Positions 10,478 to 54,189 of a stretch of 64,000 nt of DNA are shown piece after piece; position 1 is the stretch's first letter; each line of letters starts with the position of its first letter. Under the pieces are notes generated by a model, which saw only the letters and a list, made by a program, of their open reading frames with translations, was not told the origin of the DNA and did not search any database. Where the stretch lies: sequence record MF498773.1; one strand, written 5' to 3'. A program made the translations under genes and the position numbers.

Positions 10478-10553
10478 AGTTAAAAATCCCTTATAGATCT
10501 ATACTTATTTAGTACATTGTAACATGATGTTCTTCAAGACTTGATCTTAGATG

Positions 10554-10669
10554 GTTTCACTTGTAATCAAAGTATAAAATCTCTATAAGTATTTATATAG
10601 AAAATCTATAATTAGAAAGAGTGAGCGAAGCGAACAGGCGGCTACGCCGTCTCACTACGTTCGAGATCT
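10554..10669 (-). repeat. 116-bp hairpin-rich element, inverted copy at 53672-53789
   Basis: Near-identical reverse complement (2 substitutions, one 2-nt indel); contains GCGAAGC, GGCG-GCTA-CGCC, TCTC...GAGA hairpins and TATAAATA. Confidence 0.95.
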
Positions 10670-10678
10670 GTAGATATG

Positions 10679-10702
10679 AAAAAGCCACCCCGTAGGATGG
10701 CT
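10679..10702 (-). terminator. gp54 terminator, identical 24-bp copy at 54161-54184
   Basis: GCCATCC-TACG-GGGTGGC-TTTTT (UNCG loop). Confidence 0.88.
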
Positions 10703-11708: not shown

Positions 11709-12545
11709 ATGGAAATTGATATTAAAAAGATAATTGATTGTGTAAAAAATGATGGACATCATATTATAGAAGTATTAGACAAACCTAAGTTTGTGAAAAA
11801 GTCAAAAGACTTAGGTGAGATTTTTATTTTGGGAAAAATAAGGGGAACTAAACGTAAAACAATAGGATACAATACATCAAGATATATTATTGTGTGTACG
11901 AAATGTAATTCTGACATAGAAATGTACGATAAACCATTTTTTCCTCAATTGAATGATATTGATTCAGGACGGGTCAATTATCCATGTGGATGTTCCGAAA
12001 ACCACCAACATAATGAAAGACAATACGCATTAAAGATTAATAGAAAAAGAAAAGGGTCTATATCAGTTTCTGGATTTAAAGGTAAGTTTAGAGGTGGTGA
12101 ATCTAGGGCATTATGTAAATGTGAAGTTTGTTTACATGAATGGGACACACAAGCAAAAATTTTATTGAACGAAAATGGTAAAGGTTGCCCTATGTGTGCT
12201 AAATATGGGTTTAAGAAAGATAAACCTGCTTGGTTTTATGTATATAAATATGTCCTTTATTCCGGTGAAATAATTTATAAGTATGGTATAACAAATAGAA
12301 GCCCAAAATCAAGAAGCCAAAACACAGTTGTCGCTGGTGATGTTAGTAAAACGGAAGAAATGTTTAAAATTAACTTTGATGTCGGTATTGATGCCGAGAA
12401 TTTAGAATTGTTGGTTTCTAACATATTCAAAAATGGTCGTGGGTACTATAAGGGTTCATCTTTTATAAGTGGTCATACAGAAACTTTGTCTGAATCTGAC
12501 GGTATTCTTCTTTTAGAAAAAATTAAAAACGGAGAGATCAAATGA
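11709..12545 (+). mobile_element. Free-standing homing endonuclease (Zn ribbons plus C-terminal GIY-YIG-like domain)
   Basis: CxxC pairs, CPMCAKYGFKKDKPAWFYVY...YKYGITN; lower GC; antisense insertion between gp54 and gp2; late promoter CTAAATA at 11661-11667. Confidence 0.8.
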
Positions 12546-14046: not shown

Positions 14047-14069
14047 TATTTAGGGTTTGCCCCTAAATA
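14047..14069. promoter_or_regulatory. Back-to-back late promoters for gp4 and gp48
   Basis: TATTTAGGG-TTTGC-CCCTAAATA perfect inverted repeat. Confidence 0.85.
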
Positions 14070-14094
14070 CAAGTAAACAACATGAGGTTTAAAA

Positions 14095-27240: not shown

Positions 27241-27290
27241 TTTTCTCCTAAATACAAGGGTGAACCCTATAAAATAAAGGATATAAAATA

Positions 27291-40980: not shown

Positions 40981-42903
<1,923 letters not shown>

Positions 42904-45591: not shown

Positions 45592-47169
45592 ATGTTCAAT
45601 GGTCGTTTTACTGTTCCAAGTTTTCTTCGTCCGTGGGCGAAAGATGACGATAAGGAACTAGATATAGAACTCAAATCGGGTATTGATAGTTTCTCCGCAC
45701 CAGACAATCCCGATGGTGCAAATTCTATTGATAGAACCGATACATCAGCACCCAGTCGTGCATATCAAGCTTATGCATATGGTACTGAACAAAAAATTAA
45801 TTCAACTCGTCAACTTATAGATCAATATCGCGCTCTAACAAATTATCACGAAGTTGATAATGCGATTGATGAAATCGTAAACGATGCAATTGTTCAAGAA
45901 GACGAAAAGAATACTGTTTCATTGGATCTGGATGCAACTAAATGGAATAAATCCATTAAAGACCGGGTTCAGGAAGAATTTGAAGAAATATTGTCTCTTT
46001 TGAACTTCGAAAAAGAAGGTAAGAGATTATATCGCCGTTGGTATGTTGATAGTCGGATCTATTTCCATAAAATGATCGATCCGAAACGCCAAAAAGAAGG
46101 TATTAAAGAACTTCGGTTGTTAGACCCACGAGCCGTATATTATCACAGAGAAAACTTTAAAGAGGTTGAAGGTGGTAATAGCATTTATAAAGGTCATCGT
46201 GAATATTTTACTTATTCTGGTACTGAATGTTCGACTTATAATATAAACCAAGCCAATACAAACCATATCGTTATTCCCCGCGATGCGATGGTTTATGCTC
46301 ATAGTGGCAAAGTATCTTGTGATGGTAGATCCATTATAGGGCATTTACATGCTGCAATAAAGCCAGCTAACATTTTGAAGATGTTAGAGGATGCATTGGT
46401 TATATATCGCGTATCACGCGCACCAGAACGTCGTATTTTTTATATTGACGTTGGTAATATGCAACCGAAAAAAGCAACCGAACACGTAAACAAAGTCATG
46501 CAAGGTTTTAAAAACCGGGTTATCTATGACAGTTCAACTGGTAAGGTTAAAACAGCAGCCAATAACCTAAGTATGACAGAAGATTTCTGGTTGATGCGTC
46601 GTGATGGTAAGGCTTCTACTGAGATTTCTACTCTTCCGGGTGCTCAGTCTATTGGTGAAATGGACGACGTTCGTTGGTTCAACCGTAAAGTGTATGAAGC
46701 AATGAAATTGCCTCTTAGTCGTCTTCCAATGGAATCTGGTGGTGTTACATTCTCAAATGGTGGGGAAATATCTCGTGATGAGCTGTTGTTTTCTAAATTG
46801 GTTCGTGGTATGCAACGCCAATTTGACCCAATTTTCTATGACCCACTTGTTACAAACCTTATTCTAAAAGGTATTATGAGTCAGGAAGAATGGGATGAAG
46901 AAAAGAATAACATCAAGATTGTATATGCCAAAGATTCTTATTATGAAGAACTTAAAGATATTGAGATTCTTCAACGTAGAGTAGATGTGGTTAGTAGTCT
47001 CATTCAAAATAACATTGTCGGAAAATATATGTCTCATAATACAATTATGAAAGACATAATGAAAATGACAGATAAACAAATTGAAGAAGAGGCGAAGAAG
47101 ATTGAGGAAGAAATGAAATCCGAAATTCTCAATCCACCAAATCCAGAAGATGGTCTCGCTGATTTTTAA
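45592..47169 (+). CDS. 20: Portal protein gp20
   Basis: YHEVDNAIDEIVN, YRVSRAPERRIFYIDVGN. Confidence 0.98.
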   Translation: MFNGRFTVPSFLRPWAKDDDKELDIELKSGIDSFSAPDNPDGANSIDRTDTSAPSRAYQAYAYGTEQKINSTRQLIDQYRALTNYHEVDNAIDEIVNDAIVQEDEKNTVSLDLDATKWNKSIKDRVQEEFEEILSLLNFEKEGKRLYRRWYVDSRIYFHKMIDPKRQKEGIKELRLLDPRAVYYHRENFKEVEGGNSIYKGHREYFTYSGTECSTYNINQANTNHIVIPRDAMVYAHSGKVSCDGRSIIGHLHAAIKPANILKMLEDALVIYRVSRAPERRIFYIDVGNMQPKKATEHVNKVMQGFKNRVIYDSSTGKVKTAANNLSMTEDFWLMRRDGKASTEISTLPGAQSIGEMDDVRWFNRKVYEAMKLPLSRLPMESGGVTFSNGGEISRDELLFSKLVRGMQRQFDPIFYDPLVTNLILKGIMSQEEWDEEKNNIKIVYAKDSYYEELKDIEILQRRVDVVSSLIQNNIVGKYMSHNTIMKDIMKMTDKQIEEEAKKIEEEMKSEILNPPNPEDGLADF

Positions 47170-49438: not shown

Positions 49439-49563
49439 TTTTCTGTTTAACGGGGAGTTATAAAAATAACTAGAAATAACTCCCCTAAATATATTTGTAA
49501 GGGAAAGAAGAAATGGTTCTTCTCCCAGAAAATTAAATTTCAAATCCAAAAAGGAAAACAAAA

Positions 49564-51286: not shown

Positions 51287-51379
51287 CGTTTTTCTTACTG
51301 GTCTAAATAATACTAGATAGAGTTCATACAGTCAACCAATGAATGAGCCCTAAATAAAAGAAAAAGAGGAATCTTAAAA

Positions 51380-53070: not shown

Positions 53071-53631
53071 TTAGAGATTGAAAATGTCAACCTTTTCTAA
53101 TACTGGTATATCATCAATACCCAACCATTTACAAAGTTTTGATCTTTGAACTGGGTTCATAATGTTTAGGGTAGGTATATTTAGGCTTCTTGCTATTTTA
53201 ACCGCAGTAGCAGTTCCACCAGATACAGTACCATGTATCGATTCTTCCGCACAAAATACAACTAAGTCAGAATAAGACTTGAGATTTAATCCCATAACTT
53301 GAGGAACGTTCCTAGCGTGTAATTCTTGGTGACCAATTGGCATAAATTCCCATCCAATACCAGACCCATGAACACGGGAAGCAAGCAATTCAAATTCATA
53401 ATAGTTTTCATGATTTTTGACATTAACACAACCGGGTCTATCATCAGGACGATATACAACGGTTAATGCTGGGTCATATTCGGTTAGGAAAAGCGTATCA
53501 GAACCAATGGCACCACCAGATCTAGCACCATAACCACGATCAGAAAAAGCTTTTCCAATTCTTATCATCAACTGTTTATACTCTTCGTTAGGATATCTGG
53601 TTCCTATAAGAGTTACAATTTTCCTTTTCAT
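53071..53631 (-). CDS. SLOG/DprA-like Rossmannoid protein (186 aa)
   Basis: TLIGTR, RSGGAIGSD, LHARN, SGGTATAVKIA. Confidence 0.82.
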   Translation of the reverse strand: MKRKIVTLIGTRYPNEEYKQLMIRIGKAFSDRGYGARSGGAIGSDTLFLTEYDPALTVVYRPDDRPGCVNVKNHENYYEFELLASRVHGSGIGWEFMPIGHQELHARNVPQVMGLNLKSYSDLVVFCAEESIHGTVSGGTATAVKIARSLNIPTLNIMNPVQRSKLCKWLGIDDIPVLEKVDIFNL

Positions 53632-53671
53632 GATGATATTTTAACACACCTAAATAGCATTATAAATAAAT

Positions 53672-53789
53672 AGATCTCGAACGTAGTGAGACGGCGTAGC
53701 CGCCTGTTCGCTTCGCTCACACTCTTTCTAATTATAGATCTTCTATATAAATACTTATAGAGATTTTATACTTTGATTGCAAGTGAAAC
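53672..53789 (+). repeat. Inverted copy of the 10554-10669 element
   Basis: Direct sequence comparison by eye. Confidence 0.95.
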
Positions 53790-53886
53790 TATTTTATTTT
53801 GTATATAAAATATACAAAAAGGTGATCTCTCGACCACCTAAGTATAAAAAGTTAAAAACATTCGTAATGTCTGATACAATACGAAA

Positions 53887-54108: not shown

Positions 54109-54189
54109 TTAACACCCTTATTATATTGACCAAAATGGTCAATTAGTATTTAGGGATACAAAAAAGCCACCCCGTAGGATGGCTAGATA

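Follow-up and report, generated by a model that had tools for sequence, protein, structure and literature searches.

What is the role of a hairpin-containing element of about 120 bp in the gap between gp26 and gp54 of a T4-like phage, when nearly the same sequence lies in inverted orientation further along the genome? The window, i.e., the whole 64-kb stretch of DNA analysed here (64,000 nucleotides of record MF498773.1), belongs to Aeromonas phage AS-szw (229,957 bp; Straboviridae, Emmerichvirinae, Ceceduovirus), a T4-like myovirus with a circularly permuted genome of ~230 kb. It contains a tRNA array, baseplate, tail and head genes and some early genes; record coordinates are window coordinates plus 62000. 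An earlier note on this DNA regarded the element as one of a pair, which could be paired replication, priming or packaging sites, the scar left when a rearrangement relocated the hub genes, or a substrate for inversion of the virion module.

The data presented below support the element as a functional, conserved non-coding signal. It probably acts at the DNA level, independently of its orientation, and the best reading is that of a duplex-opening element for early, transcription-primed replication starts, to which a probability of about 0.4 could be assigned. The element is not described in the literature searched. The family seems to be new, with PeSL-type cassettes (promoter-early stem-loops of T4-type phages; Arbiol et al. 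2010, PMC2839356; Comeau et al. 2014, PMC4122927) and T4-type origins as its nearest known classes.

Copies, loci and spacing

The inverted duplication reported in the earlier note (10554–10669 against the reverse complement of 53672–53789) was confirmed. Copies A and C, designated so below, are inverted with ~96% identity over 121 nt. Their arms 10551–10623 and 53720–53792 (73 nt) are 96% complementary, arms 10618–10669 and 53672–53723 (52 nt) are 98% complementary, and an indel of 1–2 nt is located between both arm pairs. Each copy consists of an AT-rich palindromic module beside a GC module of three mini-hairpins. The modules present in the window are listed below, with scores from R1, a sequence-only covariance model of the AT half built from 30 distinct modules.

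10552–10618, plus strand: AT module of copy A (68 bp, 21% GC, partly dyad-symmetric; R1 67.6 bits)
10619–10669, plus strand: GC module of copy A (hp1 GCGAAGC, central hairpin CGGC-TAC-GCCG, hp3 ACTACGT, which reads ACGTAGT on the minus strand)
53672–53724, minus strand: GC module of copy C (inverted repeat, 98%)
53725–53791, minus strand: AT module of copy C (inverted repeat; R1 71.4 bits)

A search for further copies in the genome and in relatives, proposed in the earlier note, extended the pair to a family. Six copies were found by BLAST in the whole AS-szw record:

Copy D, record start 29: before a 126-aa ORF
Copy F, record start 42192: before the ndd cluster
Copy A, record start 72551 (window 10551–10669): gap between gp26 and gp54
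Copy C, record start 115672 (window 53672–53792): next to gp24/inh, between a 73-aa late ORF and a DprA-like 186-aa ORF
Copy B, record start 140264: after the long tail-fibre gene, before nrdA
Copy E, record start 181624: after alc

The same six copies are recovered by R1 with 64–72 bits each, and no further match above 9 bits was obtained in the record or in the window except for the reverse strands of the modules themselves. R1 also finds six copies each in CC2, P19 and ZPAH1, and seven AT modules at six sites in phage 65 and avDM6. The six sites are syntenic in all seven genomes examined, which represent two genera (Ceceduovirus and Ishigurovirus). An assembly artefact, which the earlier note named as a possible refutation, is excluded by the presence of the element in 20 independent phage records. 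A pattern scan of IMG/VR returned only the same isolates and no extra phages; the IMG/VR copies of AS-zj (G001) were excluded from the alignments because of N masks. A MITE-like or mobile-element reading is ruled out by the cross-genus synteny and the absence of extra copies.

The gaps between the six AS-szw sites are 42.2, 30.4, 43.1, 24.6, 41.4 and 48.4 kb. Compared with random placement on a circle, the probability of a coefficient of variation (CV) as low is 0.0014, and that of a minimum gap as large is 0.006. Spacing values in CC2, P19, ZPAH1 and phage 65 are similar, but due to shared synteny they are not independent, so the even spacing is a single evolutionary observation, noticed post hoc.

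The position of the element relative to genes varies. In the AT-to-GC direction, copies C, D and F share the direction of the genes and stop shortly ahead of a start codon, copies A and E are antisense to the genes, and copy B occupies a convergent gap. At D, in four genomes, the GC module is followed within 8–20 nt by a Shine–Dalgarno sequence and an ATG; at C, the 186-aa ORF has its ATG (53631) ~40 nt beyond the GC module. Copies A, B and C are situated in structural-gene regions with fully collinear flanks free of mosaic breakpoints between close relatives. Indels between close relatives adjoin copies E and F. The gene order at the E locus is alc–E–orf78–SLT in AS-szw, alc–orf63–E–orf76–SLT in CC2 and alc–E–SLT in P19.

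Several neighbouring features were noted in passing. The 300-aa gene convergent with copy B (record 140562–141464, minus strand) carries an N-terminal GIY-X10-YIG motif (GFVYMITFSNGKKYIGAK), i.e., it is a Seg-like homing endonuclease, found at the same place in avDM6 and ZPAH1. Directly after copy B (record ~140383–140565, plus strand) there are an early promoter GTTTACA-N17-TACTAT, a Shine–Dalgarno sequence and a 39-aa hydrophobic ORF, unannotated in AS-szw; a 40-aa ORF is annotated at this place in ZPAH1. Downstream of copy F (record ~42300–42370), an inverted repeat CTAGAATCAATTCCT...AGGAATTGATTCTAG with 15-bp arms is conserved in CC2 and P19. The 186-aa ORF beside copy C (53071–53631, minus strand) is DprA/Smf-like (Pfam DNA_processg_A, weak, 1e-3; RefSeq name DprA-like recombination mediator). 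Between gp54 and gp2, AS-szw carries a 278-aa ORF (11709–12545, plus strand) missing from CC2, P19 and phage 65. Its Pfam matches are a treble-clef zinc finger and a CapR homology domain (6e-11), and the ORF probably represents a mobile free-standing nuclease-type insertion.

Structure of the AT and GC modules

The AT module is conserved along its length, with 87% mean column identity and 33 invariant columns among 30 distinct modules (alignment A2), and its GC content falls within the lowest 0.17% of 68-bp windows. Positions 17–66 match their own reverse complement with 17–30 bits (17.7 bits for R1 on the reverse strand of copy A), and in phage 65 the module approaches a 56-bp palindrome. Two hexamers are invariant in all 30 modules: TATAAT, which faces the GC module, and TATANT at the opposite end, which is read on the other strand and faces outward. 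Measured from either hexamer, the dyad centre is ~28 bp upstream. In copy A, these are TATAAT at 10606–10611, facing right, and TATACT (minus strand) at 10570–10575, facing left. A dimeric protein probably binds the AT module, which should melt easily.

The search for a -35 hexamer in the AT module gave no good candidate, the best hexamer pairs matching 8–9 of 12 positions. One pair, TTGCAA-N17-TATAAG, lacks the final T, and the -35 position of the invariant TATAAT is occupied by TATAAG. No promoter was called inside the element by a simple promoter scan. AGATCT-like motifs and TATAAATA (10590–10597, minus strand; 53746–53753, plus strand), to which the earlier note drew attention, are present in AS-szw, but these and the GATC motifs are not conserved in the sister genus Ishigurovirus.

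The GC module was studied in a MAFFT alignment of 19 distinct modules of ~50 bp (A1). The mini-hairpins with G-N-A loops named in the earlier note stood up to this comparison and are maintained by compensatory changes. The model of three hairpins gave a covariation score of 0.297 and was 97.4% paired, and 4 of its 8 pairs showed both-sided changes (C-G to U-A six times, G-C to C-G four times, C-G to G-C once, A-U to G-C twice); these compensatory changes amount to few independent events. Two other pairings were tried and rejected: a long nested hairpin (score 0.156; no both-sided change in the outer helix; pair 29–58 broken in 6 of 19 modules) and a pseudoknot (X:x, Y:y; score 0.107; no both-sided changes in its two helices). 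Both are ~95% paired, and neither has both-sided changes outside the central hairpin. Repeats of the arm pentamers give several pairing registers in the GC module.

The G-N-A loops occur on the top strand in hp1 (17 of 19 modules), on the bottom strand in hp3 (17 of 19) and on the bottom strand in the central hairpin (13 of 19); GCGAAGC is found on the plus strand, and GCGTAGC and ACGTAGT on the minus strand. Since the loops occupy opposite strands, each strand offers the same layout, and the GC module is a pseudo-dyad. GCGAAGC or GCGTAGC is present in 11 of the 19 modules, namely in all those of Ceceduovirus and in ZPAH1. In phage 65 and avDM6 (Ishigurovirus), hp1 reads GTGAAAC and is closed by a T-A pair; by analogy, the table in PMC13037366 predicts that this variant is not ultra-stable. 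GCGAAGC DNA mini-hairpins have a Tm of 76.5 °C and are known at sites in phage G4, RSF1010 ssiA and the N4 promoters (PMC13037366).

Folding of the GC module as DNA with generic nearest-neighbour parameters, which may lack a triloop bonus, was unremarkable (z from -0.3 to -0.9). As RNA, the forward strand folds better than the reverse one (-18.8/-20.7 against -14.8 kcal/mol), but with z of only -1.6 to -2.5. An Rfam search on the A locus gave only noise, and the terminator scan did not call the GC module, the T-tracts of which are weak and variable. Since the 2-bp stems show compensatory changes and nearly all pairs are Watson–Crick, DNA mini-hairpins fit better than RNA helices.

Terminators and a late-promoter-like sequence are located near both copies of the window:

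10512–10520, minus strand: late-promoter-like CTAAATA of gp26, ~38 nt upstream of its ATG, outside the element
10679–10702, minus strand: 24-mer intrinsic terminator of gp54 (terminator scan; exact copy)
53820–53839, minus strand: separate terminator after the 73-aa ORF, directly upstream of the AT module of copy C
54161–54184, minus strand: second exact copy of the 24-mer, terminator after inh (terminator scan)

The 24-mer was reported in the earlier note as a shared terminator accompanying the duplication. The exact direct match holds; its assignment to the same duplication does not. A pattern search of the whole record found three exact copies (72679, plus; 116161, plus; 136396–136419, minus), so the 24-mer represents a separate small repeat family.

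Ordinary early promoters of AS-szw consist of TTGACT or GTTTACA, N17 and TAnnAT and have good -35 hexamers. The late consensus CCCTAAATA is situated upstream of gp4, 48, 9, 13, 15, 19, 20, 23, 24 and uvsW. The AT module matches neither form. AsiA is present in AS-szw (74 bits; record 46020–46247, outside the window). No match to the MotA_activ and MotCF domains was obtained in AS-szw or phage 65 with a search silent in control genomes too, and no TGCTT MotA box occurs in the AT module. A search for a T7-like RNA polymerase gave no match, its positive control being silent as well. Since AsiA was detected and the MotA domains were not, the clade should use -35-independent promoters with another activator. 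The reading of TATAAATA in the element as a late promoter was rejected because the late consensus of the phage is CCCTAAATA, and the copy belonging to gp26 lies outside the element.

Two further observations concern late promoters. CCCTAAATA, used instead of the TATAAATA of T4, occurs for example at 14060–14075, 27260–27275, 49470–49480 and 51350–51360, often just after a terminator hairpin. On the plus strand at 53648–53660, opposite the DprA-like gene, a CTAAATA motif resembling a late promoter is directed into copy C, entering it from the GC side. This motif, conserved also in phage 65 and ZPAH1, would give late RNA antisense to early genes.

Exchange between copies and genome orientation

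The two modules are rearranged relative to each other in several genomes. In ZPAH1, copy C shows an exact inversion of the 38-bp GC module with respect to the AT module; in copy B, the AT module is inverted, with the GC module on its other side. At the A locus of phage 65 and avDM6, two convergent AT modules surround the GC hairpins.

AT modules of AS-szw and phage 65 are 82.5% identical at the same locus and 83.1% identical at different loci, whereas within one genome the identity reaches 90–95%. These values indicate concerted evolution, i.e., the copies exchange sequence. Between phage 65 and avDM6, the orthology of the GC modules is preserved (92% against 70%), and within Ceceduovirus those of copies A, B and C are identical. 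Co-variation of AT modules within genomes, with GC modules keeping orthology, is consistent with a shared trans-acting binder. Phages AS-yj and AS-szw are 100% identical at the C locus and only 97.3% identical at the A locus, i.e., the phages are mosaics of each other.

Copies A and C, being inverted, could in principle recombine and invert the 43 kb of the virion module between them, as suggested in the earlier note. Their 96% identity and the gene conversion, which shows that copies do meet, favour this possibility. However, both the A locus and the C locus are contiguous and in a single orientation in 14 records each, gene order and the A–C distance are kept across genera, and the inversion is absent from every sequenced relative. 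No strand-switch joints were found in contigs of other isolates, which are a weak test; in Logan, the contigs are interrupted at the repeat, with loose ends that represent flanks of the other copies. Genes for resolvase-family or serine invertases had no match in AS-szw, and the positive control was detected in 12 of 14 genomes. The element thus differs from Gin/Hin-type invertible segments, and crossovers between A and C are possible as rare events at most, with none fixed. The related proposal of a scar left by the move of the hub genes fails for a different reason: the other copies are located at unrelated loci (five of the six), and the sister genus, too, has the gp54–gp26 junction with its element, which is older than the split of the two genera. 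A two-copy repeat that is both the scar of that move and a current substrate for inversion is therefore very improbable.

Candidate functions

The reading of the element as a PeSL-like regulatory cassette is the closest competitor. The AT module would be a bidirectional -35-independent promoter with the dyad as the site of an activator replacing MotA, the GC module a 5' leader or a bidirectional attenuator/terminator, and the copies homology patches for gene shuffling. PeSLs are likewise intergenic composites of ~100 bp with an AT-rich region, -10-type hexamers and a GC stem-loop at a variable position relative to the promoter, repeated within the genome as homology patches beside indels (PMC2839356, PMC4122927), as seen here at E and F. 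The invariant outward hexamers equidistant from the dyad centre, the presence of AsiA with MotA undetected, the better RNA fold of the forward strand and the GC modules just upstream of gene starts at D and C agree with such a cassette; the last observation is a point against the origin reading, because a promoter-plus-leader also explains it. However, PeSLs contain a sigma70-like early promoter (-35, ~17 bp, -10), while the hexamer pairs of the element do not exceed 9 of 12 and its -35 positions are poor, although ordinary early promoters of this phage have good ones. PeSLs number tens and are clustered in hyperplastic regions, with mini-circles formed between neighbouring copies; the element has just six evenly spaced copies, syntenic across genera and 25–48 kb apart, half of which (A, B and C) lie in structural regions with collinear flanks and no indel association. 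In place of a G-tract/C-tract terminator, its stem-loop comprises three G-N-A triloop mini-hairpins not called as a terminator, and its AT part is a 50-bp dyad conserved at full length. Its orientation relative to genes is incoherent, and its sub-modules flip without loss. Covariation favours 2-bp mini-hairpins of little meaning in RNA, and the long RNA hairpin is broken at pair 29–58. An exclusively regulatory cassette is, therefore, a tentative possibility, though a promoter/terminator role is nearly as likely as a role in replication starts.

Two other readings have less in their favour. A family of structured RNAs of ~50–90 nt could be transcribed from TATAAT, ending at A in the adjacent terminator, and serve as a put-like antiterminator, a protective 5' stem-loop or a protein decoy. 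The -10 directly upstream, the succession of promoter, structured region and terminator in copy A and the covarying helices are compatible with it, but the RNA would be changed by the inversion of the ZPAH1 C GC module and by the flipped AT module of ZPAH1 B, G-U pairs are almost lacking, 2-bp stems are not RNA-like, the z-scores of RNA folding are modest and Rfam gives no match; this makes the RNA family quite improbable. Somewhat less improbable, though still unlikely, is another genome-scale protein-bound site with no priming: a recombination or gene-conversion hotspot seeding recombination-dependent replication, a boundary of supercoil domains or membrane attachment, or a target of a topoisomerase or structure-specific nuclease. 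Even spacing, dyad symmetry of both modules, cruciform-capable hairpins beside an AT-rich flank, the exchange of sequence between copies (AT modules in every genome, GC modules of A, B and C within Ceceduovirus) and the indels at E and F would all fit it. No candidate binding protein was found, and the collinear flanks of A, B and C speak against a hotspot; the evidence does not separate this reading from that of an origin.

The replication-start reading is preferred because, among the readings considered, only a genome-scale role such as replication starts predicts the even spacing. Together with the copy number, the lack of a -35, the two dyads, the free orientation and the 2-bp mini-hairpins, this points to a duplex-opening start site and not to a plain PeSL. 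Replication or priming, put forward in the earlier note, thus is still the leading candidate in view of the even spacing and the occurrence of the element in either orientation; the pairing of two sites is replaced by six. GC skew follows the gene strand, without a shift at 10.6 kb, and is uninformative on origins. Among public RNA runs, none contained the phage, and two raw runs with zero reads say nothing on its transcription.

We infer protein binding, opening, priming and replication at the element to proceed as follows. Early in infection, the AT dyad could open, and RNA polymerase made -35-independent by AsiA may start at the opened dyad. Each strand of the GC module could extrude a G-N-A mini-hairpin together with a short GC hairpin. 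The neighbouring hairpins could keep the strands apart or mark single strands, after which the phage replisome would load. The six sites would then be early replication start points, comparable to oriF and oriG of T4.

T4 has at least five origins, two of which, oriF (uvsY) and oriG (34), are each defined by a promoter together with an unwinding element (Kreuzer and Brister 2010, PMC3016281). They resemble the element as units of ~100 bp combining a promoter-type -10 with an easily unwound AT-rich segment, present several times per genome (six in the Aeromonas clade). Copy B adjoins the gene-34-like tail-fibre gene, at the place where T4 has oriG. Both T4 origins work without a -35, on a -10 and an activator site, and the element also has a -10 without a -35. 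T4 uses a MotA box at -30, whereas the element has none and MotA is undetected. The unwinding element of T4 is downstream of the promoter; in the element the AT segment is upstream of or over the -10 hexamers, and the GC module is downstream of TATAAT. All sites of the element, recognised here from sequence, share one cassette followed by a hairpin module. Such a standardised origin cassette would be unprecedented in the T4 family, which is an argument against the origin reading.

The hairpins resemble ssi-type signals (complementary-strand origins of G4, St-1 and alpha3, RSF1010 ssiA/ssiB and promoters of the N4 virion RNAP; PMC13037366). Mini-hairpins of the GCGNAGC type have been documented where priming occurs in phages and plasmids. 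The element shares with them GCGAAGC, GCGTAGC and C-GNA-G triloops with 4-bp GC stems, which belong to the ultra-stable class. As in ssiA/ssiB, the hairpins are on opposite strands beside an AT-rich segment. In contrast to ssi signals, the element belongs to a double-stranded T4-like genome with its own gp41/gp61 primosome, and the GTGAAAC of Ishigurovirus is without the C-G closing pair.

A more specific and rather speculative version of the replication-start reading is that the clade replaced the heterogeneous origins of T4 by one standard cassette at six even sites. The AT dyad would be recognised by some phage protein, possibly the MotA substitute of AsiA-positive, MotA-negative phages, co-evolving with all six copies, and the opposite-strand G-N-A mini-hairpins would be marks for bidirectional priming or helicase loading.

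Irrespective of its function, the element provides a case of dispersed repeats 25–48 kb apart that are homogenised in a lytic phage with no large rearrangement fixed. The concerted evolution of the AT dyad points to a binding protein in a clade with AsiA and without detectable MotA. If the role is regulatory, the PeSL concept would be extended to a dyad-symmetric form, which would define the missing promoter class of these phages. T4 origins share no common motif, and only two of them are understood (PMC3016281). If the cassettes are origins, the element would be relevant to what defines an origin in T4-like phages, and its six near-identical copies per genome would provide a clean and easily mutated 120-bp system.
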